Shown here: positions 11,244-51,342 of the stretch, one piece after another
How positions within the stretch are numbered: the stretch's first letter is position 1
How the letters are laid out: each line of letters begins with the position of its first letter
Origin: Bispira polyomma
Lineage: Eukaryota
Length of the DNA: 64,000 nucleotides
Reading direction: 5' to 3'
Assembly: GCA_965649765.1 (NCBI GenBank)
Contig: OZ287754.1
Coordinates: 33,914,001 to 33,978,000, forward strand
The notes under the pieces: model-generated
What the model saw: only the letters and a program-made list of their open reading frames with translations
Databases searched by the model: none
What the model was told of the DNA's origin: nothing
Translations under genes and position numbers: made by a program

Positions 11244-11351
11244 ATGGGCACACGGTCTAAAGACAAATTGGGTGTGGGCAGTGTGCTAGCAAGGTTCACC
11301 AAAAAGAGAAAACATCACAGACACCAGACTTCACTGAGAGATCTCAACAGA
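11244..11351 (+). CDS. DEG/ENaC (ASIC-like) channel, putative first coding exon (MGTRSKDK...RDLNR; alternative in-frame ATG at 11145)
   Basis: Open frame, acaATGg context, and a strong phase-0 donor AGA|GTAAGT matching the phase-0 acceptor of the next exon. No diagnostic protein motif. Confidence 0.55.
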
Positions 11352-11972
11352 GTAAGTATGTGTGTGATATAAGAAGTAACTTACTGATAGACCTTAACAG
11401 ATTAAAAATGTGTGTGGTATACCTAGTAACTGACTGATAGACATTAACAGAGTAAGAATGTGTGTGGTATAACAAGTAACTGACTGATAGACGGACCTCA
11501 ACAGACTAAGTATGTGCATGGTATAACAAGTAACTGACTGATAGACGGACCTCAACAGATTAAATATGTGCATGGTATAACAAGTAACTGACTGATAGAC
11601 GGACCTCAACAGACTAAATATGTGCATGGTATAACAAGTAACTGACTGATAGACGGACCTCAACAGACTAAGTATGTGCATGGTATAACAAGTAACTGAC
11701 TGATAGACGGACCTCAACAGACTAAGTATGTGCATGGTATAACAAGTAACTGACTGATAGACGGGCCTCAACAGATTAAATATGTGCATGGTATAACAAG
11801 TAATTGACTGATAGACGGACCTCAACCGACTAAATATGTTACATGGTATAACAAGTAACTGACTGATAGATGGACCTCAACAGATTAAATATGTGCATGG
11901 TATAACAAGTAACTGACTGATAGACGGACCTCAACCGACTAAGTATGTGCATGGTATAACAAGTAACTGATA
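11341..11972. repeat. Minisatellite of about 12 units of 50/54 bp starting at the exon/intron junction
   Basis: Unit ctcaacagactaagtatgtgcatggtataacaagtaactgactgatagacggac. Confidence 0.95.
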
Positions 11973-12404
11973 TACCTTTTTGTAAACTGGTGTGTGTGGT
12001 CACTTATCTCCCTGTTTAATACGAGGAAAAAAACCTCTGGCAATGTATTGATATCTACCAGTAGTATGGCCTACCATACACCAATGAAGCATTGTAAAGA
12101 CGGACGCTATAGTAAGCTAATATAAATAACATTAATATAAACATTAATCCAGTGTGCCATTATAATTTCCACATTACATTTAAGTATTATTAGGCTGGTG
12201 TGATATCAGACTAAGTACATGCTTTACTGCTGCTGTATAATTCGAAGCCAAAGTGTTTCAAACCTTTTAGTTTGCTTATAACAACAAAATGGGCAAGCTC
12301 TAAGGAAATTGTATATATTAACATGTAGTATCTTATTGTTATTGTTGTCTTCCATTGATAAGAAGGGAAATATAATAGCATGACATTGGGTATTATTTGC
12401 ATAG

Positions 12405-12538
12405 AGGCGCAGTACAGCTGGTTATCAAGTGGTGGCAGCCTCCAAACAGTGGAACATCCTGCTGAGAGAGTTCACCCAGTCCACCACCCTACATGGCATC
12501 CGATACACCACCCTGGACACACGCTTTGTCTTCAGAAG
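12405..12538 (+). CDS. DEG/ENaC channel exon: N-terminal HG gating motif
   Basis: tag|AGG...; RRSTAGYQVVAASKQWNILLREFTQSTTLHGIRYTTLDTRFVFR(R); donor AG|GTCAGT, phase 2. Confidence 0.92.
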
Positions 12539-12815
12539 GTCAGTATCTACCTCTCACTACTTCAATCATAGCATAAGTATGCTCAAACTCGTCAGCTCTT
12601 AGGCCTACCCTGGTGAAAGCTTGTTAATAGACAGGTTATATCTTGATTATGTCTTATATATTGCTATATTAGCTATATAGTATCTGCTATAGCTGTCTTA
12701 TAGCCTTCTATAGTTAAAGGTCTGAGAAACACAAGAAAGTCTGTTATTTTTGCTATAGATAGTTTCCTGAAGTCCACCTGCTTTTCTTCACACCATCACT
12801 GAAGACAGCCCACTT

Positions 12816-14765
12816 CTAATCTAATCTAGTCGTACTTTTATAGCGCTTAATCTTTGTACAACAAATTCTAAGGCGCAACAAACCCAAAACGTTAATCGAA
12901 AATCAAAAAAATAGTGGGCGGATGGAAGTCGTAACCAGGGAGACTACCGTAAATGGTTACGACGGCTAAGGTGGAAAAGCCTGTTAAAAAAGATAGGCCT
13001 TCAGCTTACTCCTGAAAGAGGAGAAAGTTTGAGCCAGGCGAACATGATCAGGTAGGCTGTTCCAAATGAGGGGGCCATCATGAGCTAGACAGTGATTGAA
13101 CTGAACTTTGGATTTGTGGATGCGAGGGTCGAAAGTGGGAATGTTAAGGTATAATTTATCAGGGTTACTGCGCCTTGTCCTGACTGAGCATGTATATTTG
13201 GATAGATGGGGGCTAAAATAAGTGGGTAATCCAGAATTTAGAAATTTATATATTATTGTTGCTGTTTTGAAAGCAATACGATATTTTATTGGGAACCAGT
13301 GCAGTGACTTGAGTACAGGAGTAATGTGGGAAAATTTAAAAGTTTTGGTCACAATACGTGCCAATGAGTGTTGGATATTCTGAAGGCGCCTGAGATCACT
13401 ACGAGATAAGGAACGGAACAGAGAGTTGCAGTAATCAAGCCTACTGCTGACCAAAGCATTGGCAACAGTGATTGCAGTGGATTTGGAAAGATAGCGTCGA
13501 ATCTGCCTGAAATCACGGCGGCCAACATGATCTACACACCGATGCGACATGGTTAGAGAAGGAGAATTCAGAGTCGAACACCACACCCAGGTTTCGTACT
13601 TTGTCAGCTGGAAATAGCCTGCGGCCAAGAATGTCAAGTGGAAAACAGCTGGACAATTTTTCCCGTTGCGACTTGGAGCCAAACAAAATAAACTCAGTCT
13701 TCTCAGGGTTCAGCTTAAGTTTATTTGCTGCCATCCAGTGTTGTACATCAACAAGGCAGTTCTGTAAGGAAGTGAAAGCTACCTGGGCAGAGTCAGGTGT
13801 AAGGTGGATGTACAGTTGGGTATCATTAGCATAGAAGTGAAAGTTTATGTTTTTGTATGCAGCAATAATCTTGCTGAGTGGAGTGGTGTACATGGAAAAC
13901 AAAATGGTACCCAGGACGGAACCTTGGGGAACACCAAATTTTAACCATGTTGGGTCGGATAAGATATTGCCAATTTTGACTGATTGGAATCTATCAGATA
14001 AATATGCCGTGAACCACTTAAGCGCCATACCGCTGATACCGAACCAAGACGATAGGCACTCAAGAAGAACTCTGTGATCAATAGTATCAAAGGCTGCTGA
14101 CAGATCCAGCAGTACTAAGGCAGTAGGCATACCTTTGGATAAAGATGTATGAACATCATTTTTGATGCAGAGAAGTGCAGTCTCAGTAGAATGATCACTT
14201 TTGTACGCTGACTGATACTTATTGGACAGATTGCTGACGTCAACATGTTGTTTGATCTGTAAGGCAACCGCGCGTTCTACCAACTTAGAGATATAGCAAA
14301 GGCCTGAGACAGGACGGTAATTTTTCAAGTCAGCCTTTGGAAGAGAAGGTTTTTTTATTAGAGGAGTGACAATAGCCTTTTTAAAGTCATCTGGAAAGAC
14401 GCCATTTATCAACGAGAGGTTGATAAGTTTTGTGATTGAAGGCAATAAAATGTCAATACATTCTTTGACAAGGAATGTGGGCCACGGATCTAGCAAGCAA
14501 GATTTTACGGGTGATGCCAGTATAATTTTCCTGACTTCATCAACAGTTACTGTGGAGAAACAGTTGAAGACGGTTGGTGGAGATGTTTGTAAAGGGGCAT
14601 TTGGGGCAGCCAATGTAAAACCGTCACGGATTCTGGTAATTTTATCAGTGAAAAAAGTACTAAAAATGTTTGCCAGTGATTTGCTATTGGAATTTTCTGG
14701 TAGTATAGTCTGTTTTTTACGGTGGAGGGTGCTATTTAGTTTTTGCCAAAGTTTCTTCGACTTGT
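12816..14765 (-). mobile_element. CR1/L2-group LINE, 5'-truncated copy C (full RT domain, inactive)
   Basis: ORFs 13513-14826 and 12984-13682; NYRPVS, DLSAAFDTIDH, YADD changed to YAND; 5-bp deletion near 13527 relative to copy A; (GATTA)n tail. Confidence 0.95.
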
Positions 14766-15589
14766 AAATGGCTCTAGTTGATATTCTTTGTGGTTTAACA
14801 ATTCTCTCTGCCACTGCAGAAGTCAACTCTTGTTCTGTAAGTCTGGTATCCTAGAAACCATGCGTGAAGATTTAGAAAGGCTGGCTCTTGATGGAAGTTG
14901 TGAGACAGCGATTGTTTTAGTAACTTCTGTAAGGAAGTATTAGTAGGGGGATCTGTTGAGACAGTTCTATTAGGTCCCAGAACCAGGACATTTGTGGCCA
15001 ACCTGATGCTATGAATACTATTTGACAGTTGCATACAGTTCCACTGGGTAAGTAATTGTATTGCAATACAAAGAACATTCCCTGCAGCATTTTTAATCTC
15101 TTCTTAAACAACTTGTACGTATTTAACATCATGCAGAAGAGAAGTGTTGAATTTCCAAAAACCCTTGTCTCTTTTCGAATTTTAATTCATCAACAGCAAA
15201 GAATGATCAGTCTTGTATCCAGGTTTAATAAATTGCTTTCTTATAAGCCTGTATAGCCAGGCAATATAAATAAGGAAGACAACATTAATCCAGTGGGCCA
15301 TTATAATTTCCACGTTACATTTAAGTATTCTTACTCTGGTGTGCTATCACTATCTGTAAATTTTAAATTCGTTGTGCTTTAACTTGTGAAGGGAAACTTT
15401 ACCAGTCCATGCATTATCAGATATGCAAACACAATTCTTCAGTTCACTACAAGAACAAAAAATATTCCTGTGATGGCTGCCTTTAGTAAACACCTTAGCA
15501 ATATTGGGTAAACCTTGGTAGAATTTGGGTGGTTTTTCTTTTCATCTTTGATTTCCTGTACATTTTTTATCTTTATTTTGTTTTGTATT

Positions 15590-15907
15590 TTGCATTTTTT
15601 GCACGTCCCACAACGGCTTTTACGTGATATTGCGAGTACTTGCATCTTGTACATGACTTGGCAGCAAAACTACAAAAACACCTGCAAATTAATTTCAGAA
15701 CCTGTTAGCATACTTCAAATCTCGCAAATGTGATGCAGAAATTGACGCTGACACACATTACTACCTAATGGGTTTGTGTGTCCAAATTTCAACAGTTCAA
15801 AATTTGAAATACTTGCATGTCTAATACGTCAAAACCTCATGCAAACCATTCCCAAAATTATTTTTTACATGACATCCAGTGTAAAGGCCGGTGGGACCGG
15901 GGCATTA
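15590..15907. mobile_element. Harbinger-like terminal fragment related to 7560-8040
   Basis: Ends GGTGGGACCGGGGCATTA; shared subterminal words (aaattt.aac.gtt..aaatt, atgcaaacc). Confidence 0.5.
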
Positions 15908-16379
15908 GACTGAGAGACCGATCTGCACCCTTAAAAGCTTTTGCACCCCAGAAAAACTAGCAGGATGGGCAAGATTAAAGTACCTAGAAGTCAAAAGTTT
16001 GTTCATTCTTTCTTTTTTATATTACGATTTAGTAGAACATAACAGAGATAAACGGAGTAATCACAACCAGATATCTCTGTTGTGCTAATTATAAGTGAGA
16101 TTGAAAATACAGGCCAAAGTCACAATGGTCAGAACAGTTATTTGGGCACATATTTCACTATAGATTTCTCACAGAAAGTATGCATTAGGATTCTAGTATA
16201 CAAATGACTTTATAGAACCGAATTGAAAAAATTTCATAGAATAAAACCTAAAATATTCAGCAAAACCCAACTTTGAAGATCAATACATATAAACATATAT
16301 CCAAGGAACATATAATATGCGCATAATAAACACATACTTATAATGTTACCACATGCTGTGCTAATACAATTGGACCCAA

Positions 16380-18120
16380 CTTAAGCATCTGACCATTATG
16401 CCAACTGAGGTCTTTGAGGTAAAAGTTGGTAAACGTATTTCGGAATTTCCAGTAAAATGCATTCGAAATTTCATCTAAGGAAATGCCACCTGTAAATGCC
16501 AAAGAATTCGCCATTGGGTGAATGTCATGTGCTTTGACTTGGAAAATTTGCTGTAACTCACTGTCTGACTTTTTTTAAGCCAAGAGGAAATCGTAACCTT
16601 AAAGATATCTTTGTTTTGGCCTCCATTATAGCTACACACAAGAGTTTCTTTTTCCCTTATGTGTTTGGTTCTACCTAAATAGTACTCCAAAGCTCTAACT
16701 GTGCAGTGACCTATTATCAACTAAACTGGACCTGGACCATCAGAAGCCAATTGCTTGTTTGCTAAAAAGGTTAGTGATGGTGTAAAAGTGATCTGAGACC
16801 AGTTTTCCTTATAACTCAATAAGGAATGGGTCTAGGAATGAATTTCACTCCTTCTTTCGCCAGAAGCCAAGGTAAAAAAGTTTTGAAGGTCAAAATCTTT
16901 AGAGAGGCCTTACCTAAAGGTTCAACAGGTGCCTTAATAAGTAAGGGAGAAACCAGTCGAAGCCCATTTAGGTATGGATCTATTACTGATACCTAAATCA
17001 TCTGCAGTTGTAGTTCTATAACCTGCAATGGTTGCAGTCTCTTTTCCTCAAACAAAATATTAGGGAAATTTGCTACATTTCAGTGATATCTGAGATGTCT
17101 ACCTTACCCTCTTCATACCACTTCCCAAAAATGGACGACCTTACCTTGTAGTTCTTTCTGGATGAAATTATCTGAAGCTCCTTAATTCTTTGAGCCATTT
17201 TATCTGAAAATTTCTGTGAATTTTCAGGGTTGACTGTAGGTGCCAAACATGAAATTCAAATACAAGTAGTTGTTGAATCTGCTGCTTCAACAAATTCTGC
17301 CATAACAGTAGCCTCATTGGTTGCTTTGTGGACAACTCTATGAGGTCCTAAAACCAAGGCATCCCTGGCCATCCTGGTGCAATAATGATAACCCTGCACC
17401 TGTAAGTATGACAGCCACAGGACAAAACACATAAGCATCCAGTCCATGAGATGTTTAACGCATCTATTTCCCATGCTTGACTGTCGGGGACAGGCGACAA
17501 ATACATTGGTTGATGCCACCGTTGGTTGATGCCAAGACCTGAGGATTCACAGACCATTCGGTCTGAATAATTTTGTCTCACCAATATCCGACATGTGCCA
17601 GGACATTTAAACTCCCTAGAATGTGTTTGTCTCTCATCTGGATTCCTCTGGCTTTCGTCCATGCAAGAATCCTGCAACTGAAAACACATTTCCATGGAAT
17701 GTGTGCCTTCCTCCTTGTTGACGTAAGAGACTACTGTGAAGTTGTCTGCGGAAATCAATAGGTTTCCGTTTAGAATATGTTTAGAATAGAATATGTTTTT
17801 GGAATGCTTTTAGTGTTGGAAACACTAAACACCGTAGATTATTTAGATGAGCCCCAGCCCTTCTCTAAAGCATCTGTAAGCAGAAGAAGATTCTACTCTT
17901 TCTGATGAAGTGGTGAACCCTTTAACAGATTTGGAAGCTTTGTCCACCATTCTAAATGTGACCTTGAAATATCCAGCGACTAGGGAAATTTCCAATTCAT
18001 CTTGAGATATCACTGGAATGGCCTCATGTGCAGACTACTCTGTGGTATTGTCTTCCCCATTGAAGCCATGCTCCCAATAAGGGACATTAACTTCCTTAGA
18101 GTTGTTGCACTGACCTTCAA
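16380..18120 (-). mobile_element. DIRS1-type YR retrotransposon remnant: RNase H, methyltransferase-like domain, YR
   Basis: LMSLIGSMAS, HMRPFQW, DNFTVVSYVNKEEGTHS, YLSPVPDSQAWEIDAL, IIIAPGWPGMPWF, CTVRALEYYLGRT, TISSWLK. Confidence 0.8.
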
Positions 18121-19439
18121 CATGGAAACTATTTTTTATCAATTTTCGGAAAGACTACCCAGTTTAGTAAATCAAACCAGTAAACTAGAAACTCGGTGTT
18201 TTGGGATGGTGTTAATTCAAAATATTTTAATTTATCACCCATACTATGCTCATTGGCCTGGTTAGGGTAATGCTATACTTTAGAATTGCAAGTCTGCATT
18301 GGCCAATGAGTTGAACGGTTCCAATAAATAGGTGGCGTTAGGAAATGGTAAGGGTATTTCGCTAACAAATTTACTCATCTTTATCTAAGACCATATCAGA
18401 GGGTAGTGTACAGATACTTGTGTATGCCTCAGTCACCATTTAACCTACAATTATATTATCTATATTACTGTAAAGCTTACAATCTCGAGAGATGTTTGAA
18501 AACGTCTTTTGTACAAAACAGAAAGTAAGTATCTTACGGGCGCCTCCCACTTTCACCTTGGCCTTGCGATTAACTCCATGTACCTTGCATGTATCTGCCG
18601 TGGTGAAAATATGTGTTCATCGCCAATCAAATCTGGTTTCTACTCGCGATCAGCCAGATCATATTATGTATAGAGAAAAGTATAACGATACAACTGCTGT
18701 GTCACTTTACAAAAATTAAGGTTTTTTTTAAATTTTCTTGTTGGGCATGGAAATCTACGCTTACCCAGGATTTCAGATGAAAATCACTGTGGGTTCAAAG
18801 TTTTATACCGCTTACATTGAGAGATGTTTCTGCGACTGGCTAATCGCCATGCACGCACGAGCATTTTGTAAGTCACTGAAGTTGGAGACAGGCATTAAAA
18901 ATGCTGCCTGTTAACTACAGCTTACTGGAGGATTTCGCAAGAGATACACTAAACAGCAAGTGATTTTAAAATTAAGAAAATTGTACGATAAATAATTCGA
19001 ATATTAATTAGTCCCCTAAATTTAGCGAAAATATGGCTTACATAGTGTCATTTTGCATAAGACCCATAAGGTCATTAAACAACCCAAGTTCAGGCTGTAT
19101 ATGAGTAGCATCTCGAATAACAAATCATGAGACAATAATAGGCCCAAAAGTTTAATATGTTTCAAAAATAGAACTATGTTTCTTTCACAGTTGTAATACT
19201 GCCTACCATTGTATCCCACATAACCATCAGATGCTGTGTCTCAAGAAATACATGTATATTGCAGTGTGTTATCAAATAATTGCAACAAAAATAATTGTTT
19301 GTTGGAAATGCATGGATTAGGATACAACTAAACAAAATAACGATTGAGATGTGTGGAATTTTAGAAGAACGTGATGTGTGATGATCTTATATTACTAATT
19401 GTTGGCGTTAACCCATTTGGTGTAATTTATGTTCTTTTT

Positions 19440-19940
19440 GACATTCAGTATCTATAAAAATGAATTGTAGATACTGTGTGTCAACTGCAAATCACATTGG
19501 GACTGAGTGGTGTACAAGATAGGTCCCAAGATTAGTGATTAATCTGCGTATTGACAGACTTTCTCCATGACACAAGTCATGGTATCTGTCTCTTTTTAAC
19601 GGCGTTCTTTTGTTGATTGTCCTTGCACAATCTGTTTTAAGCTGCCAAAGCAGTTTTTCCAGATATAGCTAAATATCACTTATAACAACAACCATTAGGC
19701 TCCATATTATACGTGTTATAGCTTAAAATCATTGAGCTTATCCCTACAGAAAAAAGGGCAGATTTGTAACACAAAATTCTCCTTACTACTGTGACTGTCT
19801 AGTAAAACCGTATATTGTGTGCTCCACTACTTCTACTGTTAAAGCCTTTGTCTTTAACTGCTATTTTGCATGAATGTAGCTTTCCCATTCCTCTCTTAAT
19901 CTTGGACCATAAAAGATGATTTTCAGTGAATCATAGTTTA
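19440..19940 (-). mobile_element. Highly decayed CR1/L2-like ORF2 fragments
   Basis: Minus-strand traces LGPI..LYTT..FAVDTQ; many indels. Confidence 0.3.
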
Positions 19941-20821
19941 CAAAATGGCAGGTTATGGCCAGAAAGTCGTAAACGTGTCTTGGACCAGTTCCAAGTAGAC
20001 TTGTATACTGAGGCTGATTCACATGACAAACACGGTGAAGCAGCCTGTGTTTCCATTACAATTGTTGTTTATGTCTAGTCCGGACATTAGGCTGGTTGTC
20101 AGAAGTCAGTGAGATGGAAGATTTTTATGACAGATTACAAGAAAGTAAACAAATCAATGTCTGGTAACACAAAAATCTACAATAAACTACCAGTTAGGAT
20201 ATTTATTGTATGATTAATTTATGAAAAAACACCCCAAATCTCCATAAACAACGTGTAAACTAAACATACTGAACTATTCTATACAAACAATGTGTTAACT
20301 AAAATACATGAAATGATCAACAAAGATTTCTCAAAGTAAGGAAGTGTTCCTCATAAAAAAATTTCTTTGCGATATCAGTTCTTTTCACCTTAATCAAGAA
20401 TTATAGATTAGAGTGGTAATATAATTTACATCCATAGTACATCTTCAGCGTGTATACTCTAACAAGGTATTATTGTCCAATGAACATACTCCCCACAGTA
20501 AGTACTTATATGTTTTGTGAATGAAACATAAAACCCATATCCTTGACATCCAGCAAATATGTTTTGAGTAGAAATATAAATGTTCTATATAATGTAGGAT
20601 TCAAAATAATTTGGCCCAGCCAAAAGTTATGTCACTTCTAGAGGAGCTGGTTCTGTAAAGCTACTACTGGTATGGTTGAATCTAATCTAACTTTTATCTC
20701 GGTGCTAGCATATTCTAAGGCGCACGAGACAATTGACAATTTCATATAGCCATTGGACATACAGGGGTTGTGACCATGGAGACGCCGAAAAAGGTAAGAA
20801 GGCTAAGCTGAAAAAGCAGAA

Positions 20822-20943
20822 TCATATAGAAATTAGATATTACTTGTGGTGTAGTCATAAGGGAGTTAGATATCACTTTTGGTGGAGTTATAGGAGCCAG
20901 ATATCACTTCTGATAGAGTCATAGGAGGCAAATATCACTTTGA
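20822..20943. repeat. About 4 diverged ~31-bp tandem units
   Basis: gagtcataggag..agatatcactt recurs. Confidence 0.6.
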
Positions 20944-21429
20944 AGCCAAAGGAGCATTGCACATTAACTCGACAGACCTTGGTTGTAAGTTCAGTATTTG
21001 GCTTTTGTCTAGTTCTGAAGTTCTCAGTAGTTTTTTTAGATAGCAAATTGGAGGCACAACCTGCCACAGTTGTGCAGTTGAATAATATTCTAACCCTTAT
21101 TCTAACCCGTATTCGAGAAGGCAAGAGGGTTCCCAGGGAAGATACCACATTTTCTTTCAAGTGCAGCTATTCTAGATGTTCGCATAAAATTGCAGGGGTG
21201 TGTTACTACGAAATTGCTGAGTGTGGCTAGCACTGAAATATAAAGTCGTTTTTAACTTGCTGCCCAAATGAAACAATCAATGTTTTAATTTGTGTAGCAT
21301 TGTACAGTATGTTGAAAACATTATATTGTTAATATACATGTATTGATTACTTTTAATAGCAAGATTGAAGAGTTGTAATACAGGAGTGAGGGAGCGGTGC
21401 TGTTTGTAGAATCTCTATGTCATTCACAG

Positions 21430-21597
21430 GATCTTCTGGTGGTTCATTGTGGGCGCGACTCTGGGAATCTTTATCTTCTATGTGTATAACCGGGTAGAAG
21501 AGTACCTCAAGTACAAGAAGAATGTCAGTGTAGAGGAGAACTATGTGGCCCAAATGACCTTCCCCTCCGTCACCTTCTGCAACCAAAACAGAATCAG
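21430..21597 (+). CDS. DEG/ENaC channel exon: TM1 and post-TM1 FPxVTxCN motif
   Basis: ttcacag|G; IFWWFIVGATLGIFIFYVYNRVEEYLKYKKNVSVEENYVAQMTFPSVTFCNQNRI(R); phase 2 in and phase 2 out (AG|GTCAGT). Confidence 0.95.
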
Positions 21598-23272: not shown

Positions 23273-23573
23273 NNNNNNNNNNNNNNNNNNNNNNNNNNNN
23301 NNNNNNNNNNNNNNNNNNNNNNNNNNNNNNNNNNNNNNNNNNNNNNNNNNNNNNNNNNNNNNNNNNNNNNNNNNNNNNNNNNNNNNNNNNNNNNNNNNNN
23401 NNNNNNNNNNNNNNNNNNNNNNNNNNNNNNNNNNNNNNNNNNNNNNNNNNNNNNNNNNNNNNNNNNNNNNNNNNNNNNNNNNNNNNNNNNNNNNNNNNNN
23501 NNNNNNNNNNNNNNNNNNNNNNNNNNNNNNNNNNNNNNNNNNNNNNNNNNNNNNNNNNNNNNNNNNNNNNNNN
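23273..23573. other. Assembly gap (301 N)
   Basis: Run of N. Confidence 1.
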
Positions 23574-28765: not shown

Positions 28766-31700
28766 TTTTTTTTGGTTTTTCTTGACAGTTCAATAGACTT
28801 TAGTGTTTCTTTCAATATACATCAATAAATATAATACAATACATAACATTGGTGACATATGTATAAATAAAGACAATACAGACAGACAAAATCTTTTCTG
28901 GCCACCTTCTTTCCATTAAATAAAAATACTTACTCTGAAATTATCAATGATTTCCAATTATTCCATCTTTTGTTAAAATTTTAGTTTTGCATATTTTATT
29001 TGCTTAATAGTTCTTCCTCCAAAAAAACTCTCTGGAAATCTTTCTGTAACATTTTAAAACTTAGTGGGTAGTTCTTATTAGAACATTTAAAAATAAATCT
29101 TCGTGTTAATAACAGCAGGAAATTTAGTGGCCAAAAATAATCGTCCATGTTAGTATATCCAAATATTTTCATTTCCTCACTGAAAATTATAGTTATTTTT
29201 AAGTGGTCTTTAATTAATACACATAAGGTATTCCATAAACATTGTGTTTTTTCACATTGTACAAACAGATGGTAGACAGTTTCTGTGCCTTTTTCACATA
29301 GACTACACATATCATTGTTTGATACTTTAATCTTATGGAGATATTCCCTAGTACCAAGGATGTTATATATAATTCTAAATTGAAACCATTTCAGCATAGT
29401 ATCATTCACTGTGTTAAAGCATATTTTGTAAATTATTTTCCATTTTTCCTTTTCTATTTTTAAATTCAATTTGTTTTGCCATTTTGATTGGCACTTTGGG
29501 ATCGGAACAGATATATTTTTATTTAGCATTTTGTAAATTTTCTTACTTCCTTTTCCAGATTGATACAAACTTTTAATATGAAATGGATGAAATGGCCTCA
29601 TGAGAATAAATGTATCACCTTGTTTATGTACTTTTATGTACTGTTTTGTAGCCATTTTTAATTCTAAAAAAGTTTAGAATATTTATCTTTATATCATATA
29701 ATTGTTCAATTTCATTAACTGTTCTTATACATACATGTTCATTTACTAAGTCCCCAACTATAGATATTCCCTTGTTTTCCCATTCAGGAAAACACATGTG
29801 GTTTTCAGAAAATTGTTTGTTGTACCAAAGTGGAGTTTCTAAAATATCAAAATTGTCTTTAACTTTTAGTAAGGAACAAAAGTTTTCCCATTTATGAAAA
29901 ATTTGTTTCCAAAATTGGTTGTTTAACTTTTTTGCAATGGCAAAACTCCATTCTCCCCCTCTTGAGGGTAGTTTTTTTAATTTTACATATTCTCGTCAAT
30001 ACTTGGTACCAAGGAGGCTCATTTGATTGATTACATTCAAAAATTCGCTTAATCTATCTCAATTTCATAGAGTTTACAAAGTTAAAAATATTGATCATGT
30101 TTAGACCTCCATGAGGGTTGCTCATACACATATTTTTTCTACTAATTTTATCATTTTTTCCATCCCTAATAAATTTGAATAGATTACTATTAACTTCATC
30201 TATGATTTGTTTCACTACTGGGATTGAAGTGAATAAATGATTAAGAATTGGTAATAGCAACTGTTATTTTACCTATGGGTGTCAAAAAACGATTTGACCA
30301 ATGTGCTATTGTAGATTTTACTTTTTTTATTGACTTATCAAAATTTTGTGTTGGGATACTCTTCAAATCTACAGAAAATTCGAGACCCAGCAAGTTGAAG
30401 TCAGTTACTCCCCAGCTTAAATCCATATTTACATGAAGCTTGTCTTTAGAATATCTTTTTTTTCCAATCCAAATCAATTTTGTCTTATCTGTATTTACTT
30501 TTAAGCCTGACCATGAACTGTATATTTCAAGAACATTTAGTGTTGTCTGTAGGGAGATGGTACTGCCATTTAACATTATGGTTGTGTCGTTTGCGAACTG
30601 AGTTAATTTATGCTCTACCTCTCCAACTTTAATTCCACAAATATCAGTATTTGCTTAGTATTTCTGCTGCAATTATAAGCAGATATGGTGATATTGTGTC
30701 GCCTTGTTTACAACCTCTTTTAATTGGTATAGCATCCGATAACACCCCACACTGTTGTACATGTGCTGTGATGTTATTATAAAAAGTTCAATCCATTTAA
30801 TATAAGTTTTACTAAATCCAAAGAAGGCCAATACTTTATATAAGAATTCCCATGAAATTGAATCAAATGCCTTTTCAAAATCAATTAGCATCAATAGACC
30901 AGGTATGTTTTTTGTTTCTGTGTAATACATTATATCATATACAAATCTTGTACTCTCACCTATGCTTCTACCAGTGACGAACCCTGTTTGTGTATGCGAT
31001 ATTATCTTATTTAAATACGGTTTTAACCTATTGGCGATAACTGAGGATGCAATCTTATATGTGGCACATAAAACAGATATTGGTCTCCAATTTTTCATGT
31101 ATGTTCTATCTTTCGAAACTTTTGGCAAACATGTAATTACTGATTTTTTCAGAGTACTCGAGAATGTACCTTTTTTATAGCAGCTATTTATAGCACCTGT
31201 CACGTAATATTTTAGTTTATTCCAAAAAAAATTGAGAAATTTACCTGTAATACCATCTAAACCTGGAGACTTATTATTTTTCATCGCTTTCAGTGCTAAA
31301 CCTGCTTCCTGTACAGTAATAACACCTCCTATCTCTATATCATTAACTATATGTATTTTTTTATTTTTAAAAACTTCATCCAGATTAAAATGATATAAAC
31401 TTGTGCTCTTGTTATAAAGGTTTGCATAGTAATCCTGTATGTTTTGCAAAACGTCTTTCTGTTCAGTTATTATTTGACCATTTGGTAATTTTAATTTTTT
31501 TATAGTTTTTTTCTACAAAACTCTTTTTTTCTAAATTACAAAAATATTTTTCGCCATCACTCAACCACTTTAAACTTCTAACCATATGTCTTTTCATTTT
31601 TATTGAACGTAATTGCTCTAATTCCTGTTTTTTGTCCTGTAATAACGAATTGTTTACTGAAATCGATGTATTAGTTGATTCAAGGTTTTCTATCTTTTCT

Positions 31701-33060
31701 TCAAAAGCTCTTTTTTTTTACATTTTTTTTCTTGACATTTGATGCAAACTTTATTGTTTCCCCCCGATCCTTAGATACAACAATTCCAAGAAGTTGTCCA
31801 TATTTAGTTTCATTTGTATATCGTTATTTCCCTCATTTAGTAGGTATTGGTATTCATATACAGGAATCGCGTATTCTAGTTTTTGTTCGAATATTATTTT
31901 ATGAATTGAATCTAGATAATCACTATTCTCTAACAAGCTATTATTCCTTTTCCATATACCTTTACCTATTGTAAAATCGTTTTGTGTTATTTCTAGTTGT
32001 ACTATTGAGTGGTCCGACCTATAACCTGGTTTGATTGAGCAATTTTGGACGATATCTAACATTATATTTGAGATAAAAAAATAGTCTAGTCTGGCTTGCT
32101 TTACTGGCGTTTTTCTCCTCCAGCTATACCTTTTTGTTTCTGGATGGATATTTCTAAATACATCCACTAGATCGAATTCATTTAGCACTCCCTTGACTAC
32201 ATCTCTAGCTTTACGATTGTTTATGTTTTTATAGTTATAACTATCTTTTTCTGCTTCCATAACAAAATTAAAATCTCCGCACATTACAATATATTCGGTA
32301 TTACAAGTAGTAACTAGATCTTGAATATCCTTAAAAAATTGTGGATTATCATTATCGTCAGTAAATTTATGTGAAAATTACCTAGTTTGAGTATTAACTG
32401 CAAGTAGTTCCCTTTTAAATCTTTAGTACATTTGAGTACTTCGTATTCAAAATTGTCTCTCAATAATATGGCTACTCCCCTTGCATTTGTTCTCTTCCTG
32501 CTAAAATAAAACTCATTTGGCCATATCTTTTTGAAATATTTACAATCTGACTCTGTTAAATGAGTGTCCTGTAAACATATTATGTTCACCTTTGTGTCTT
32601 TTAAATAATTGACTACATCATATCTTTTTTCTAAACTACGTATTCCTCGGCAGTTCACAGACAACACAACCAATTTATTATCCAAATTTGTCATTTATAA
32701 TTGTTACTCTCCCTACAGATTTAGTCACAATGTTATCAGGTAAAAGTAACTTTCATTGATACAATATTCATAAATAATGTCATTTTTCTTTTGCCTATTA
32801 TCAATATCTAATATTGAACAAACACAACACAAGAGAACAAACATATACACATTTACACTAAAAAAAACCCAAAAGGATTGTGACTTTAAGTTACCCCTTC
32901 AAAATATAGAATATATTATAATACATTATGATACAATAAACTCTCACACCTGTGGCCCACCTAATAATCATATATGCATACCACTGTTGTTATAATATGA
33001 TATTGTATAATGTGTAGCCCTAACAACATATTATACTGTATATAATTTGTATCCCTAACA
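28766..33060 (-). mobile_element. Tx1/L1-clade LINE: decayed ORF2 (APE endonuclease, RT, CCHC zinc finger) with poly(A) tail
   Basis: VNCRGI, CLQDTH, CGDFN, ARLDYF, SDH; KSPGLDG, NWRPIS, DFEKAFDS, QGDTISP, QFAND; CSLCEKGTETVYHLFVQC; T-tract at 28765-28780. Confidence 0.93.
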
Positions 33061-33139
33061 AATTATTTCAAACTGCCGCCTATACACCTTCATGATATAC
33101 ATGTATATAATCAACCCGTTTGAATCCATGCTCACTATA

Positions 33140-35120: not shown

Positions 35121-36107
35121 ATAGGTCCTTCATTTCTTCTTGACACAGCTACAAACACATTTGATATATCCATTTCAGTTACTGTAGTCAGTAGTCACCA
35201 GATCTGGCCATAGTTAGCTTTATTATTTTAAGTATTTTTAGCGGGAGGCATCTCCTTTTATTTTTAAATTGAGTTTTATAGTGGTTTACCTCCTGTTGTA
35301 GCGTGATATAGTTATGAGTAGTGTGGACACTCCCAGTACAAGGAAAGTTAGCTTCTGCAAGAAGTGTAAATGCGACCATGATAGACCAATAGAGGGGGTA
35401 AAGCAGCAGATAGGCTGACAAGATCGCAGGCCCAAGAACATAAACAAGATTCCCAGACTCGGTTATGGCAACTCTCATGTTGACCATTCAGGGTTTCGTG
35501 GAACAGGTGGGGGCAATGGAGAAACAGGTGGTGGACTTAGCTGCCAAAACTGACAAACCACGCAGGAATTCAGACAAAAGGCAGAGCGAGAACACCAATG
35601 AACTGGTTGAAGTAGAACATAAGTACAATCTGACCTAAGGGTAAAGCAAATGTTTAGTGATACGGCAGTCGTCTTTAAGGAGCCAAGACCCACACTCCCA
35701 AAACCAAGAAGACTAAGGCCAGGGAGGAATTAGTTTTCCCAGATACCAACGCTACTTCCATTATACAACCCAAGGAGTACTCAAGACGTAACAGACATAG
35801 GGAGCACCTACATGAACATACTGGCATCTGGACCGAGTTACCAACTAGCACAACATTTTCACATTTCACATTCAAGTAGTGGTGGTGATTCAAGGGCCAG
35901 TAACGGTCCTGCTACTTATTATTTTTCTTCAAAATCTGTTTCTTCTAAATTTGTGTCATCAGACACCTGTTGCTTTACAGACTTGGCTTTTTAGTGACCT
36001 TAGTTGGTAATTCAGTAGACTTTAAGTCAAGTAAAGAACAGAATATAGTTAAGCGAGACCTGGAACAGAGTTAAGTAATTAAGGTAAATGTAGATAAGGA
36101 GAAATGT

Positions 36108-37530
36108 AACAACATAACATAACGCATTTGATATTGCGCATTTTTACAATTCTGTTTCAAATGCTCATTTACATGAAAGTCTACTTGTAATACTTGTCAA
36201 AGAGATATTTCTTAACTTTTTTTTTAAACAGTTTTAGATTGTTACAGTCCTTGATGTTGCAGTGTAACTCATTCCACAACGATGGGCCGCTCACACTGAA
36301 TGATTTTGATGCAAAAGTGTGTCGGCTTGTCTTAGGTACAAGAAGATTGTTTGAGAAAGTCGAGGATCCGAGTCCTTTTCTGAATATTGGTTTTTAAGAT
36401 TTTGCATTTCCGTGCAGGCAATTGTACACAAGCACCATAATTTTAAATTCAATCCTGGCAACAATTGGTAGCCAGTGAGCTTTCTGGATTCAGTCGAGCT
36501 TTCATATTTTGTCCTGTTAAGTACTAATTTGGCAGCTATATTTTGAACTCTTTGCAATTTCTTGATTGAGTTTTGTGGTAAACCAAACAGTGCACTATTG
36601 CAAAAATCGAGATGTGACATTACTAAGCCTAGAACTAGTGTGCGTGTTGCTTCTGTTGTAAGGGTGGATCTGATGTTTCTAATTCGGTGAATGTTTAGCA
36701 TAGCTACTTTGCATTTATGGGTAATGTGTTGTTTGAAGTTGAGGTGGTTATCCAAATAGACTCCTAGATACTTAACGTCAGCACTTGAATTAACATCTTC
36801 GCCATTCACTTTTAAACTATGTAAGAAACCAACTGCCCTGAAATCTAGTGGAGTTTTATTAGAATAGCTTTTACCTATGTTCACACAGCATGATCTTGGG
36901 TTTAGATAGTTATTGAACCATTTCAGAGCACTTCCAGATATACCATATTGTTTGTTTAGAACTTTAAGTAGGATTTCATGATCAACTGTGTCGAAATGCA
37001 GCTGATAAGTCGATCGCCATCATTGCAGTTACTTTTTGTTGTTCCATGGCCCACAAAATGTCATTTGTTAATTTTACCAGTGCAGTCTCACAGGAAAAAC
37101 ACATGGTCATTGAATTGTTTCAGAACTGCCTTTTCTAAAACCTTGGATAAAAATGACAAATTACTAACTGGTCTGTAGTTACACAATTCTAAGTCTAGTC
37201 CTTTTTTTTTCTGAGGAGTGGTCTGATAACTGGGTTCTTCCATGTACTTGGGAAGGGTACCAGTTTGCAATGACTTATTGATTATGAGAGTGATGTGTTT
37301 AATAATGGCTCCAATAACTTTTTTTAATACTTTGGTTGGAAGAGCATCTAATTCACAAGTTTTGATAGCCATGCCACAAATTATGCTTTGTGCTTCATCT
37401 TCACTTAGGGGAACAAAGTTATGTAGTATTGTACAATCCCTTTGTTGTGGCTCAAATTTGGGACAGCTTTCTAAATCTGTTCCAATTTTCTTAGTTTTGT
37501 TCAGGAAGAAATTGAGAAGTTATATATGAC
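36108..37530 (-). mobile_element. Older CR1/L2-group LINE fragment nested in Ngaro copy 2
   Basis: NYRPVSNLSFLSKVLEK, DLSAAFDTVDH, KYLGVYLD, SHLDFCNSAL, LQRVQNIAAK; (TTATG)n-like tail near 36110. Confidence 0.88.
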
Positions 37531-38325
37531 AGCCATTTAGGTTTTGTTTCTGTAGCTAAGGACGCCTTGCAGAGGGGGTGAATGAATCCTATGATTCCCG
37601 TGATCATACTCAGTATAAAGAGATTATTGACAGAGTTACAAAATCAGGGAGGGTCCCCAAGTACATAGGTGAGTGCATTGTACTGCACTCAGAATTTTAC
37701 TTACAGTATTGGGCTGACAATATTAAAGGCTTTTATGATCAGTCTTTGAGGGACTTTGTCAGGTTTGGCTTCCCACTGGGGATAAATCACAAAGAAGTCA
37801 TTCAAAAGAATCACTCCTCGGCTAGGCAATACCCCCAGGCGGTGGACAAATACTTAGACACTGAAATGGCTCATTAAGCCATTATATGCCTTTCTATGAC
37901 CATTGCCATGATAACTTCATTTATGCCCCACTGATGATGAAACCTAAGGACCTTGATCAACGTAGAGTGATCTTAGATCTGACATTTGGAGACAATTCGG
38001 TCAATAACGCCACATGCAGAAACCAATACGAGGGAAACCCTTACAAGCTAAAGTTACCGACATTGGATGAGTTAATTCCACATCTCATGAGACTAGGTGA
38101 AAACGCGAGACTAATAAAAGTTGACATATCTCGCGCATTTAGGAACATGCACATTGATCCTAGGGATGCAGTCCATTTGGGGATTCATTGGAAAGGACAA
38201 TACTTTTTATATCAGAGTCTCGCATTTGGGGCCGTCAATGGCATGGCCATCTTTCAAAGGATTTCTGACTTTATTAGATACCTCATGAACAAACAGTGTT
38301 TCAAGGTGTACAACTATATAGACGA

Positions 38326-38476
38326 GGGAAAGGTGATAGTTCCTTACTGTGGGCCGCTTGTTTCAGTGCAGAACCTTGATCAACTGTATGCAATGTTTCC
38401 TCCAGTATTTCCAACTACCCGTCCCAATATAACCTAAACAGGTACTAGAGTGGACGTTAAATATCCCAATTCAAAA
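38326..38476 (+). mobile_element. 5'-truncated SINE copy inserted at the RT YIDD motif of Ngaro copy 2
   Basis: Close match to 56674-56826 in the same orientation, although the two host Ngaro elements are in opposite orientations. Confidence 0.75.
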
Positions 38477-40419
38477 TATTGCAGTTACAGTCATTACTGG
38501 GTAAGCTATTATATGTGCCCAGGTGTGCCTTGAATAGGCTACTTGGGTTGTAAAGATAGCATAGATATGATAAAGACTTTGTGCCGGATGAAGGTTCTTA
38601 CCTAGACATGACTTGGTTTGTTAGGTTCCTCCCGCAATTTAATGGGGTGGTGTTCTTTAAACAAGATCGGGAACAGCAGCAGGTTTTTGTAGATGCGACT
38701 TTGTAGGGGATGGGGGGGGGGGGTCTGGCGTGATCACGTCTATACTGTGGCAATACCACAGTACCTGGTTAATACCTAGACCATTTCTCAGTTTGAGTTG
38801 TACAACGTGTTAGTTGCAGTGAGGTTATGGGCCCACAAATGGAAAAATAAACCCATTTGCATAAGGTGTCATAATGCTGCTGCAGTCCAGGTCATTAATA
38901 ACGGGAGTACCCGTGACCCTTTTATGAGTCTGTGTATAAGGATAAGGGTGGTGTGCAGCAGTAATCAATATAGATATAACTGTTAAACACATAGCAGGTA
39001 GAGAAAATGTGTTGGCAGATAGACTATCCAGATCTAGCCATGAGTAGGTCATAAGGGATTATAGTTATATGGTGGTCAAAGATATTACCAATCATATGTT
39101 ACTTTTACATTTGAATATTTGGGGATCCCACAACACATAAAGCCTCTGCTGACAGCAGTTTAGGACTTATTTGGCCTTTCTCATTCATAACGAGATCTCG
39201 TTTCCCACAAGTGTCGTGGGTGTGTTCCTAACAGCACAAGCAATGACCTACCGAGTAATTAACAATTATGTATCTGGTAGTTTGTTCCACCATGTATGGC
39301 ATGAATATGTTGGGAACGTGTGGCTGTCTCTCGTTTCCTCAGAGCTGTCAAAATTACTTGGACTAGGGTTACAAATAAGAAAGGGTCCTTTTCATTGAAA
39401 AATATTAGGCATATATCGGAGGCTTCTGCAGTATTTGAAAGTACGGCAGTTTATAGGACGGCTTTCCTCAGTGCATTTTATGGCTTTCTGAGGATTTCCG
39501 ATGTGGCCCCAGTCAAAGCAGGGGATTTTGATACAGAGAGGTATATATATCTCAAGGGGGGATGTGGTGTTAGCACACCCGGGAGTTCAGTTAACGTTGA
39601 GATGAGCAAACAACATGCAGGAACAACATCTGTCACATGTAGTTATTTTACCAAGAGTGAGAAACCTGTTGATGTGTCCCGTACAGGCTTTATAAGCATT
39701 ATTATCAACAAAGAAACTTCCTTTTTCGGACCCTTTATTTGTGGATGATAGTTACCATTTGATAACTCAATGTTGAGACGGCGTTTGGCATCAATTCTAA
39801 GAATAATTGAGATCCTGTTGCAGGGACATGGGTTTCACACCTTAAGGCTGCTACTTTAGTTTTTGATATCCAATGTCTCGATGGACAATATCCGCTTGCA
39901 TGGAGTATGGAAAAATAATGCTGTATGGGTATATATTAAACAAAATTCACAGCAAGCACATTTGTTGCACTTTCTCGAACATTGTTGATTCTACCTTCCA
40001 AAGGCTACTGTTATAAATGCTTTTTGCGTTGGGGTTTGTTTTGTAATTTTATATGTTGTCAACAGTATTCTGATTGTGTGTCAGTAATAGTATTTTTCAT
40101 GTGAAAGAGTGCTAATAAATGGTAGTAGCCCAACATATATGACTAATTTCTGGCTTTATGACTGTGTGTGTAACTCCATCGAGTTGGATTATGACCAGAC
40201 CAAAGATTCTGCTAATCACAATTCTGCCAAAAGGTATTGGCCAATCACAGCGCGCTGCTGAGTATATAAACGGCAGCGCGGCCTGTTTAACTTTATTATT
40301 TCTAATATTTTTAGCATTATTTTAAAAATATTTTTCATGTGATAGAGTGCTAATAAATGGTAGTAGCCCAACATATTTGACTAATTTCTAGCTTTAGGAC
40401 TGATGTCAAATTCATTTTT

Positions 40420-40881
40420 ATTTAGTTTGGTTTGAGGTTGCTTTCAACAGCTTAGGCCATATGACAATGGCCAGATTTAATGGAGAAAGAACTCAGTGCT
40501 AAAGCACTTTAAAACAGGATTCGAACCCACATCGATGAGAGACACATATGGACATCACCAGTGGTATATATAGATGAAAGAATATGATGATAATTTAAAA
40601 AATAACTATTTGTTTAGACTATGCAATCTCTTAAGATTAAGTTAAAAGCTTAGATATTTAAATTTAGTTTTCACATCAATTTCAACACCTTAGGTCTTAT
40701 TGTGATGACCAGACTCAATTATGCAAGAAACCAGTGCTAAAGCATAGTAAATCTCCGACCTGTGGCAAGTACCTGATAAAATTTTCCCACATGAAGAAAC
40801 GAGGAGGATTCAAGCCCACATTGGTGAGAGGCCAGTGATTGTGAAGCAATCACTTCTAACCACTAGGTTAATGCAGCCCCC
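40420..40881 (-). mobile_element. tRNA-derived SINEs (partial ~40420-40540; near-complete ~40662-40881)
   Basis: Minus strand: ggggctgcattaacctagtggttagaag (box A-like), gcctctcaccaatgtgggcttgaatcc and gggttcgaatcc (box B); 3' end gacctaag.tgttgaaa. Confidence 0.65.
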
Positions 40882-43800
40882 AGCATGAATATATGTAATA
40901 GGTTGACAGGCCTTGTAATTTGATTATTACAGATATGTATTATCATTTAAAGAAACGTCCAACAGAATAAAATTCTTAGTTTTAATTTAAGTCATTGAGA
41001 CTATTTTGTTATTGACACTTTTTGACTGAGATCTTCCAAACAGGATGTTTTTTTAACCTTTAAACCTTGCACACTAAACTATCAGTCGCATTAAAGGTGT
41101 AGTATTGCATGGGATGACAAGCCATTTTACTAGTTTTAACATAAAATAGATCATATCCTATTAAATAATCCCTATCTACAAAAAAGAAGAGATAAATCTA
41201 ACAGCTGCAAACCCCCAGTTTATTTACACAATTTAACCACTTCCCCAACAGAAACTGTGTGAGTGGAGAGTGTGTGTGCTATGTCATCGGGTGTGCCCAG
41301 AAAGTCTGTTTGGGTTTGTTTACACTTTTAAACTGTGTATGATAAGTTAATGTACTCCTTTTTGGGGGGAATAAAAAGCTTCTATTCTACAGTCATAATA
41401 CATTAAACCTTCATATATATTTAATATTACAGAGGTGTAAACACATCTGTTGAAATTCATTTGCCAAACGTACACTAATTTGATTCTGATGATAATATTA
41501 AGATAACAAGTAGTAAGAGTGATCATGATAAAAATAGTACAGGTCAAAATGATGGTAGATTGAACTTTGAATATCATACTGTCCCTTCTGTTTCAAATGA
41601 AGGTGTTTCACATGATATCACAAGACAACAGAATACAGAGTGGTGAATTTAACCAAATAATATGTACAGCTTTGTCCCCAAAAAATTACTCGATCAATTT
41701 TAGCAAAATTTTTAACTGTGTAACTATTTTATTACCACTAAAATCAGTATACAAACTTTCTAGTATTATTACCTCAGTTATAAACATATAAATTCAGTGC
41801 ACAGCCAACACACACAGATTCCTTATTCACAAAAGGTCTTAGTCTTAAAATAGTCTTAAGCTTAAGATTTGGTCTTTAATTTTGGCCTTAAATATTAAGA
41901 TTTTTGTCTTTTGGTCCCCCCCCCCCCTCCCCCCCCCCCGACAGCAAATGAAGTTATTTGCTTAGTGTTGATTCTGCATTTAACACTACAGGTATAAACA
42001 TACACAGCCGTATACAGATCTACTGGGTCAAATATGTACAAAAATAAATCATTTCCTGAGATATTCCTCCTCAAAACAAGTGGTCACACCACTTTTAGGG
42101 TTTTGAACCCAGTTTTGTAAAGAATGATCCCTGAGACTGAATGGCTCATAACCTATCTATTGCAGGGGAATCTTAAGGTTATATACTATGGGGGCCCACA
42201 GTAGGAATTTATAATGTCAGTGTAAGGCCTTGGGTTCGAATCTGTTTCAGTAAGGAGTTTCTTTCATAAATGTGATCATCAAAAATATTACATGTATAGG
42301 TGCTGGGTTTGAACCTTATGGAATGTGTTTTGTGTCCTACATTTTGTGTCAATCTGGAGTTTAAAACTAACTTTTTTTCCTGGATATTTATACTTTTTAA
42401 TGTAAGGTGTCTTTTAATGGTTTTACAAAAGAAGAATATTCCTAGGTTGAAAAAATATAGGCGAGTATCGGCCATAATATTTATCAAGAGACCTAGTTCA
42501 AGGTCACAGTAAATAAAAAAAAATTTCAGATTTTAAAATTTGCGAGTTTGTCCTCCATCCAGTGTCCATCCAGTGTCCATCCAGAGCCAAATTTTGTCCA
42601 AATTTTGTCCCAACAAATTTTCAAATTTCATATTTTTTTTCTAGATATTCGAACTTTATCTAGTCTATTGTGTGATTTAATGCTTGGTAAAGTTTAGGAA
42701 AGCTACCATAGTCCTAACTTGAAGAAAACTATGTGAGTCTGTCCTCTATCTGAGTGTTACGGACTGACGGACAGATAAACCAAAAGCATGATGCTTTGTT
42801 ATAAAAATGCTCTATAAAGAAAAAAAATAGTTACATTTATAGGTTGTCATCTATACTATATATATAAATAAATAAACTTTATATGCTCTGTTTTAATAAG
42901 AACATTTTTTGTCACTATTAAAATTTCAATCTTGCAAGATTAAATTTGTCTTGATTTTTACCTGTACCATATACATAGAACAAAGTTTAAAAGTATGGAA
43001 CAAAGTCCTTTAGGGGGTAAGATCAGAACTAAAATTGTAAACTGGAAAAATAGTACTGTAGGGAAACATTTAGAAAAACTTTAGTGTGATATCCACTTAG
43101 CTGGGTATATTGTTAGCCATAAGGTCCTACTACGAATAAAAGTTCAATTTTAATTAAGGAGATCTTTGTGGGACTATAAAGTAAAATACATGTAGCTCTA
43201 CATTAATATTTGTTTAATAGTTATTTGAAAAGTTGGGTTATAAAAATAAAAAGGTTTATATTTTTATTTTTATATTTCAGCATTTTCATGTATTTAGTAT
43301 ACATTACTGGTTAATAAGTTTGAATACACTATGTGTCATTACCAAGACATTTAGCATCTAAATTTCTAGTACATTTTAAGGTGTGATACATTTCAACAGA
43401 GCTTATTAATAAACTATTTGAAAAATATCATTGCAGCCTATTGTATAGTTACACTGTAGGAGTGAGAGTAATAACTTTCAGCTAGCTATATGTGCATTAG
43501 CAGATTCATGCATTTTTATTTAAAACATTCCTTAAAAGTTTCCTAAATACCAAAATTTATAAAGACACTTATGGCTACTCACCAGTGGATATTTAAGCAC
43601 AACTTTTTTTTAGTAACAATAACATTGAAAGAAAGATTAACAAATTCTCAACATGGCAAAAAAAAAACACATACATGTATATGTATTTTCTTATGGAGTT
43701 AAACACACACAGAGTCCTCCACACAAACAACCCATACCACTAATGATGTGAAAAACAAGAGCAACAATGGCAGATACTTGTTGTAAAGAGAAGGTCAGAT

Positions 43801-43946
43801 TTCCCAGAAAAAGGGGAATATTTGTCTAACCATAGAAGTGGGATTTGTTTACTGATGTGTACTGAGATTTAATTGTGTTTCTCTGGGATATACCTGGAGA
43901 TGTACACATTAAGCAACTACTTTATCTGTGATGAATTTTTTTTCAG

Positions 43947-44014
43947 ACTCACAGCTGCTGCGGAAAAAGGCTGGTATCATAAAGTTAAAGAAATGTTCCC
44001 AGAGGAAGCCAAAT
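43947..44014 (+). CDS. DEG/ENaC channel exon following CNQNRIR
   Basis: ttttttttcag|A; (R)LTAAAEKGWYHKVKEMFPEEAK; phase 2 in (matches the 21597 donor), phase 1 out (T|GTAATT). Confidence 0.72.
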
Positions 44015-44382
44015 GTAATTACACGTATAGTATATATGTGTTATTTAGGCTAAATTGGAACGTTGTTATTTTTAACCTGCACCTTTGCTTTTTATTTGTT
44101 TGGTAAAAACATGTGGCGTTGGCGATAACAAGATAAATTTTGAGTTCATTACACTATTAGAGACATTAGTTGATATTTAGCCTTAAGTCAAACTATCAAA
44201 TAAATATGCATCTAAAATGCAGGAGATTTAAAATTAAATAGCATTAGTTTAGGTTTATAAAAATTACTTATTAACTGCTAAGACATTTTTGGGGCGAAAA
44301 GTTAATTTCTCACAGTAATAAGAAATTATAGTTGCTGCATGTTAGTATGATAGGTTAAGTATTGACCTTTTCATGGTTTTAG

Positions 44383-44502
44383 CTTTGAGGAGCTGTCACT
44401 CAGATGAGTTCCGCTGTCTGAAGTTGAAGGAGTGTGTACCACTCAGCAGAAGATGTGATGGCTTCCCTGACTGCAAGGATGAAAGCGATGAAACTTCATG
44501 CG
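44383..44502 (+). CDS. LDL-receptor class A (LDLa) module exon, phase 1-1
   Basis: ttttag|CT; [40 protein letters not shown] (six Cys, CDGxxDCxDxSDE); donor G|GTGAGT; 120 nt. Confidence 0.92.
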
Positions 44503-51235: not shown

Positions 51236-51342
51236 AGGGCAACCTTAACTTAAATTATTACGGTCATCTTAACTTGAAATCCTCAAGTTAGGGTCAACTT
51301 TCAAAATTTCAAAGCTTAAACTCATAGTGCTAAGGTGGCCCC
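51036..51342. repeat. AT-rich module with inverted ends GG(A/G)CCACCTTAGCAC / GTGCTAAGGTGGCCCC
   Basis: Ends read directly; the left ~200 bp is duplicated at 49841-50041. Confidence 0.8.

Follow-up and report, generated by a model that had tools for sequence, protein, structure and literature searches.

The finger is the variable part of DEG/ENaC channels and sets what opens them, be it protons, peptides, proteases or force, and other members of the family bind ligands in it. LDL-receptor class A (LDLa) modules bind Ca2+ and dock a lysine of their protein ligand through an acidic cage and an aromatic residue, the latter being dispensable for the LDLa fold. NETO1/2, SOL-1 and LEV-10 are CUB-LDLa auxiliary proteins of ligand-gated channels, and the LDLa module of the relaxin receptor is needed for activation rather than for hormone binding. 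In ENaC, the GRIP domain is located between alpha1 and alpha2 (PMC6197857). The present study concerns a stretch of 64,000 nt (G000:C7:33914001-33978000, hereafter the window; G + C content 37%) from an animal genome of 1.04 Gb, and a channel gene that begins within it. Our analyses indicate that this is probably a gene of 12 exons and about 102 kb, encoding a DEG/ENaC (ASIC-like) subunit of about 1,046 residues with an LDLa module in the finger, between alpha1 and alpha3/beta3, for which we propose a docking role.

Exon structure of the channel gene

Upon inspection of the sequence, five exons on the plus strand of the window link in frame through phases 0, 2, 2 and 1 at canonical AG/GT sites. 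The putative exon 1 (11244-11351) opens with an ATG and supplies 36 codons in an open frame, leaving in phase 0 at a GTAAGT donor; no homologue supports it, and its start codon is putative. Exon 2 (12405-12538, phases 0 to 2) encodes the cytoplasmic N-terminus with the HG motif TTLHGIRY and is matched by a profile built from paralogues (E 0.003-0.01). Exon 3 (21430-21597, phases 2 to 2) encodes the first transmembrane segment (TM1) and the post-TM1 motif FPSVTFCN. This exon alone matches the Pfam family ASC (PF00858) at 3.4e-13, with 49.9 bits against a cut-off of 23.6, its PDB matches are ASIC5 (8.6e-07, the best) and ASIC1 (3e-04), and its counterparts in relatives are 75% and 61-63% identical. 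Exon 4 (43947-44014, 68 nt, phases 2 to 1) encodes the finger helix alpha1, begins LTAAAEKGWYHKV and is bounded by the acceptor ttttttttcag and the donor GTAATT. Exon 5 (44383-44502, 120 nt, phases 1 to 1) encodes a single LDLa module with six cysteines in canonical spacing, which matches Pfam PF00057 (Ldl_recept_a) at 8.9e-12 (45.5 bits, cut-off 24.1) and 61 PDB sequences at E <= 0.001, including LRP2, LDLR, VLDLR, the relaxin receptors and an entry named 'NMDA receptor auxiliary protein'. The two DEG/ENaC motifs therefore stand where they do in the family, HG before TM1 and FPSVTFCN after it. A previous reading made from the letters of the window (the sequence-only reading) had described this five-exon phase chain with HG, TM1, FPxVTxCN and LDLa, and every peptide that it quoted was found on the plus strand; the exon chain of a DEG/ENaC channel plus LDLa is thus confirmed.

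The rest of the channel was sought in the 120 kb downstream of the window, using a profile built from 24 intronless paralogues of the same genome. Inside the window this profile matches only the HG and TM1 exons. Seven further exons were found on the same strand, 28.5-50 kb beyond the window end (G000:C7:34006494-34027668); the matches to the paralogue ASC profile there are at model positions 157-488. In order, exons 6 to 12 encode alpha3/beta3 (ending in GKCYTF), two parts of the palm, the thumb, a 1,594-nt exon, beta11-12, and finally the second transmembrane segment (TM2, with G-A-S) together with the C-terminus. PDB matches to ASIC1 confirm exons 6 and 12, and the selectivity filter G-x-S is present in TM2, as GLLLGASVITIFE in exon 12 aligns with FIGASILTVLE of ASIC1. 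Adding up exon lengths and phases gives an unbroken 1,046 codons over all 12 exons. The sequence-only reading, which had called for downstream thumb and TM2 exons to be found, was accordingly right as far as it went and incomplete, since the thumb, palm and TM2 exons lie outside the window.

The alpha3/beta3 exon starts at G000:C7:34006494 with a phase-1 acceptor, which fits the donors of the LDLa exon and the alpha1 exon alike. This acceptor region is present in tandem (G000:C7:34006431-34006510), as two 26-nt copies placed 53 nt apart; only the downstream copy is usable, because the upstream one reads into a stop codon. Past the phase-1 donor of exon 9, the frame remains open over G000:C7:34011239-34011282 and encodes RVKACPTKHAVCSQ, which resembles the thumb cysteine pair (C-x6-C) that the model is without.

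Exon 10 (1,594 nt, G000:C7:34024843-34026436, equal to L035:6843-8436) encodes a knuckle insertion of about 510 residues between the end of the thumb (SLSFAAIS) and the beta11 strand (KNYLQLDLFY). The architecture given by the sequence-only reading needs to be extended by this insertion, which lies outside the window and had been missed. A Pfam search with the insertion gave no family, and its AlphaFold prediction consists almost entirely of long helices at a low mean pLDDT of 44.7. Its identity is 63% with its counterpart in a closer relative (L043/P0151) and 34% with a cluster of open reading frames (ORFs) of 527 residues (P0152). A word search with the 580-residue ORF of exon 10 returned two genomic ORFs, the search having covered proteins of up to 1,015 residues as compared with the 1,046 of the model. 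In the closer relative (L043, ERZ22147071), the last three exons are 63-91% identical, and the gene as a whole is therefore maintained.

Conservation of the locus in other assemblies

In an exhaustive protein search with exon 3, nearly all matches were genomic fragments of exon size from other assemblies, none with an LDLa tail, and the contigs of these matches provided loci from five assemblies: L045/L047 (ERZ25070786), L057 (ERZ25072384), L058 and L059 (ERZ26695794), L060 (ERZ25072724) and L061 (ERZ25069580). In L045/L047 and L057-L061, the exons follow one another on one strand in the order TM1, alpha1, a 48-nt microexon and LDLa. The alpha1 counterpart, LT(T/I)AAP(K/R)GWYSIAKEL, occurs in L045, L046 and L057-L061, its phases unchanged. 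The LDLa exons of the relatives all open, behind a phase-1 acceptor, at the same codon (x-LR-x-C) and have a phase-1 end a few codons past the sixth cysteine, and that of L059 matches the Pfam family at 1.8e-10. The placing of the LDLa module in an internal exon of a DEG/ENaC gene, within the finger, as the sequence-only reading had it, is thus borne out, since the exon keeps its order, strand, boundaries and phases across five other assemblies. Taken together, the predicted architecture is supported by conserved gene structure in other animals.

The distances around the LDLa exon allow for a different explanation, namely that the alpha1 and LDLa exons, or LDLa alone, form a separate gene nested in a channel intron of about 71 kb. 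In line with such a gene, the nearest unmistakable channel exons in this genome are TM1, 22 kb upstream of LDLa, and alpha3/beta3, 48 kb downstream of it, and no RNA run contains the locus. However, three loci of the relatives are compact (L057, L059 and L061), and in these the LDLa exon is on the same strand as, and 0.3 kb from, the next conserved exon (block A), followed by block B, block C (alpha3-like) and, at 1.4 kb, the beta3 exon. The palm and thumb exons come after beta3, the exons from the next conserved one to the thumb lying within 0.3-2.9 kb, and the phases link up without a break (2 / 2-1 / 1-1 / 1-1 / 1-0 / 0-1 / 1-2 / 2). These compact loci therefore leave no room for a nested gene. 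In addition, no other LDLa module and no signal-peptide-type exon was found nearby, and all neighbouring ORFs that allowed classification belong to transposons, so that a nested gene seems scarcely credible.

Three extra finger exons surround the LDLa exon of the relatives: the 48-nt acidic microexon YPIPFSFDDDESRYD and two blocks, A and B, of 59 and 45 residues (L059:7106-7153, 9212-9390 and 9776-9911; also in L045, L057, L058, L060 and L061). Blocks A and B belong to no Pfam family. All three were sought in 184 kb of the genome studied here, by tblastn and profiles, and were not found; block C and beta3 are fused in one exon in this genome. This species thus appears to have a minimal version of the finger, alpha1-LDLa-alpha3, and the relatives a composite insert of about 170 residues.

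The comparison of L059 with the more distant L045 gave the TM1, alpha1, microexon, LDLa and block A exons as the main aligned islands, with three further weaker blocks of 54-77 nt. The LDLa exons of L059 and L061 differ at synonymous sites by a pS of 0.38-0.42 and at nonsynonymous sites by a pN of 0.05, a pN/pS of about 0.13, which indicates that in relatives the exon evolves under purifying selection. The module of this species and that of L045 share 50% protein identity, keeping the six cysteines and the acidic cage, while the flanking introns share nothing; in L045/L047, only transposons were met in the 14 kb downstream of LDLa. In our species the exon is supported by DNA contigs from two samples, which reproduce 43893-44800 and 43947-44800 without difference and take in exon 5, intron 4 and exon 4, the last wholly or for the most part. 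When the LDLa ORFs of this genome and of L059 were used in word searches, no match resulted, and the ESM Atlas gave no usable match.

These data bear on the possibility that the LDLa exon has become a relic which splicing now leaves out in this species, whose lineage is already without the microexon and blocks A and B. The absence of the flanking finger exons of the relatives is consistent with such decay. Nevertheless, the open frame, six cysteines, acidic cage and both splice sites are intact in spite of introns that no longer align with those of the relatives, and the exon is identical in two samples; we regard a relic as most improbable.

From the gene structure we infer that the mRNA includes the LDLa exon, which may be a cassette. 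The sequence-only reading had pointed out that a symmetric exon could be skipped in frame, and the exon is indeed 120 nt long with phases 1-1. The LDLa form could accordingly be rare, or limited to a tissue or stage, the main isoform running from alpha1 directly to C7:34006494. Skipping keeps the frame, as the alpha1 donor shares phase 1 with the downstream acceptor, and the exon is equally symmetric in the relatives. On the other hand, its acceptor and donor sites are strong, and purifying selection together with deep conservation indicates that translation of the exon is frequent enough to be of consequence. We consider predominant skipping possible but unlikely; as it concerns the frequency of use, it is compatible with the architecture.

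The LDLa module and its proposed role

The module is positioned after alpha1 and before the segment aligned to alpha3-beta3 of ASIC1, in the place where ASICs carry alpha2. Its Ca2+ cage is intact, with CDGxxDCxDxSDE and the residues D, D, D and E kept; the relatives have CDAFPDCED(Q/E/K)(S/T)DE. At the docking position, two residues before the fourth cysteine, the relatives L045 and L057-L061 have Tyr or Phe. The LDLa exon is single-copy in the genome, the next best LDLa matches being 51-57% identical, and no second LDLa was found in the 184 kb covered. No furin-type site was seen adjoining the module. The origin by exon shuffling put forward in the sequence-only reading fits the phase 1-1 exon in the finger, but the module is old and single-copy and does not represent a recent shuffle.

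In the working that we propose, the LDLa module would project from the periphery of the finger, at the site where ENaC has its GRIP domain. There it may dock a protein partner in a Ca2+-dependent manner, be it an auxiliary subunit or a ligand that is soluble or part of the matrix, and the effect of docking would pass through the finger-thumb interface to the gate. The helical knuckle insertion of about 510 residues would probably be part of the same enlarged extracellular apparatus. A Ca2+-dependent docking site feeding finger-thumb gating is, in our view, the most likely role of the module.

The main rival to the docking role is a Ca2+-dependent structural or intramolecular gating role. The LDLa module would then serve not as a ligand receptor but as a structural cap stabilised by Ca2+, or as a gating element acting within the molecule, and the channel might be sensitive to extracellular Ca2+. 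This would accord with a cage that is intact in a module whose docking aromatic residue is Arg here, with the presence of a single module, whereas lipoprotein receptors use arrays, and with PDB matches that include LDLa modules of relaxin receptors. Against it, the docking position is still occupied by Tyr or Phe in the relatives. We give this role a minor but real chance.

Several observations weigh against the docking channel as we have drawn it. The docking aromatic residue is replaced by Arg (SRRCDG). The finger is built differently here, because the microexon and blocks A and B are absent, and a function cannot simply be transferred from the relatives. The symmetry of the exon lets LDLa be skipped, and a search for sequencing runs of the locus gave three DNA-type runs and no RNA run, so that splicing is deduced from comparison. 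Intron 3 (22 kb) and intron 5 (48 kb) are filled with transposons, and the former contains an assembly gap. The thumb of the phase-consistent model has 7 cysteines as compared with the usual 9, and reading through after exon 9 conflicts with the phase-1 acceptor of exon 10, which is kept in L043, making this boundary ambiguous.

A more far-reaching proposal, which we hold to be rather unlikely, is that the LDLa module joins with the helical knuckle extension in a head serving as receptor or tether, which would gate the pore, or couple it mechanically, through a Ca2+-dependent bond to a protein outside the cell or to a component of the matrix, and that the channel is one of a set of decorated channels in this lineage. 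If this is true, a pore-forming subunit would have its own built-in receptor head.

More generally, a conserved protein-binding module at the site of the ENaC GRIP domain would represent a natural experiment in placing new gating inputs on a pore, and the LDLa module may offer a concrete handle for finding the extracellular partner of an orphan invertebrate channel.

Genomic surroundings and comparison with known systems

The assembly gap (301 N, 23273-23573) lies inside intron 3, with the TM1 donor about 1.7 kb upstream and the alpha1 acceptor 20 kb downstream, in AT-rich DNA where it adjoins a (TA)13 run. It overlaps no exon, and the reading frame is independent of it, the TM1 donor and alpha1 acceptor both being in phase 2. 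The gap bears only on the length of intron 3 and on trust in the scaffold join, because in seven loci of relatives the alpha1 exon comes directly after the TM1 exon, with the phases unchanged. Weak tblastn clusters in intron 3 (at 34.3 kb and 37.2-37.4 kb) were considered as exons and rejected as noise, having stops and no motif.

The remainder of the window after the LDLa exon (44503-64000, plus strand) is the first 19.5 kb of the approximately 48-kb intron 5, contains transposon ORFs and is followed by the next exon at G000:C7:34006494, 28.5 kb past the window end. Among the 18 long intronic ORFs scanned, those that allowed classification are transposon genes of the LINE, LTR, Harbinger or Ngaro type, and 6 had no Pfam match. 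Three ORFs with no Pfam match, all on the plus strand, lie directly downstream of the LDLa exon (45165-46214, 46195-46725 and 48467-49036). The first, of 350 residues, has more than 116 scored genome copies (7,846 candidates), and because of this high copy number it is taken to encode a transposon protein. Minus-strand LINE-type ORFs with reverse transcriptase, endonuclease and zf-RVT domains (6321-7556, 13516-14850 and 28999-32377) are placed within and upstream of the introns of the gene. High-copy repeats at 43700-43922 and 44720-44800 border a unique island of 0.8 kb with the alpha1 and LDLa exons, and the summed contig depth of these flanking repeats is 10-400 times that of the island.

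The genome contains more than 100 ASC matches, many of which lack introns. A tandem array with a spacing of 13.3 kb is made up of seven intronless ASC genes that score identically (G000:C12:5792399-5873588, L017-L023). Two further intronless DEG/ENaC paralogues, of 971 and 946 residues (L048:1329-4241 and L049:975-3812, both on the minus strand), have an insert of about 400 residues in the finger, between ASC profile positions of about 108 and 120, which has no Pfam match. A polybasic tract, KKKRRRK, occurs shortly past the FPxVTxCN motif in L030/L048.

With regard to characterised channels, the sequence-only reading knew of none with this architecture, and in agreement with this we found no characterised ENaC-family channel with an LDLa module in the literature searched; the papers containing both terms concern proteases such as TMPRSS. 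The best PDB match of every channel exon searched (TM1, alpha3/beta3 and TM2) was ASIC5 or ASIC1, and as only these best matches connect it with them, the term ASIC-like denotes an apparent resemblance and not membership. Like ASIC1 and ASIC5 (BASIC), the predicted subunit has the HG motif, TM1, FPxVTxCN, alpha3-beta3 ending in GKCYTF, the palm strands and G-A-S in TM2. Unlike them, it has an LDLa module following alpha1, a knuckle enlarged by about 510 residues and, in the model, fewer cysteines in the thumb, and the identity over the matched stretches is low (HMMER E 1e-3 to 1e-6).

The resemblance to the GRIP domain of ENaC lies in position: in both cases an extra domain is found in the finger after alpha1, at the periphery of the ectodomain, and GRIP controls gating (PMC6197857). 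The two domains themselves are different, as GRIP is an ENaC-only beta-strand domain released by proteolysis, whereas a disulfide-rich, Ca2+-binding LDLa module is encoded here. The nematode EGAS proteins, which the sequence-only reading had offered as a conceptual parallel, are likewise DEG/ENaC subunits with a shuffled extracellular module of a kind typical of receptors and matrix proteins. The parallel holds to this extent, but the module there is EGF and not LDLa, and no EGF match was found in any exon scanned; in addition, EGAS channels give no currents when expressed alone, the parallel itself being uncharacterised. Finally, as in the complexes formed with NETO1/2, SOL-1 and LEV-10, the LDLa module of this channel would stand at the extracellular face of a channel complex; in those systems, however, it is carried by a separate subunit, whereas here it appears to be part of the pore-forming subunit.

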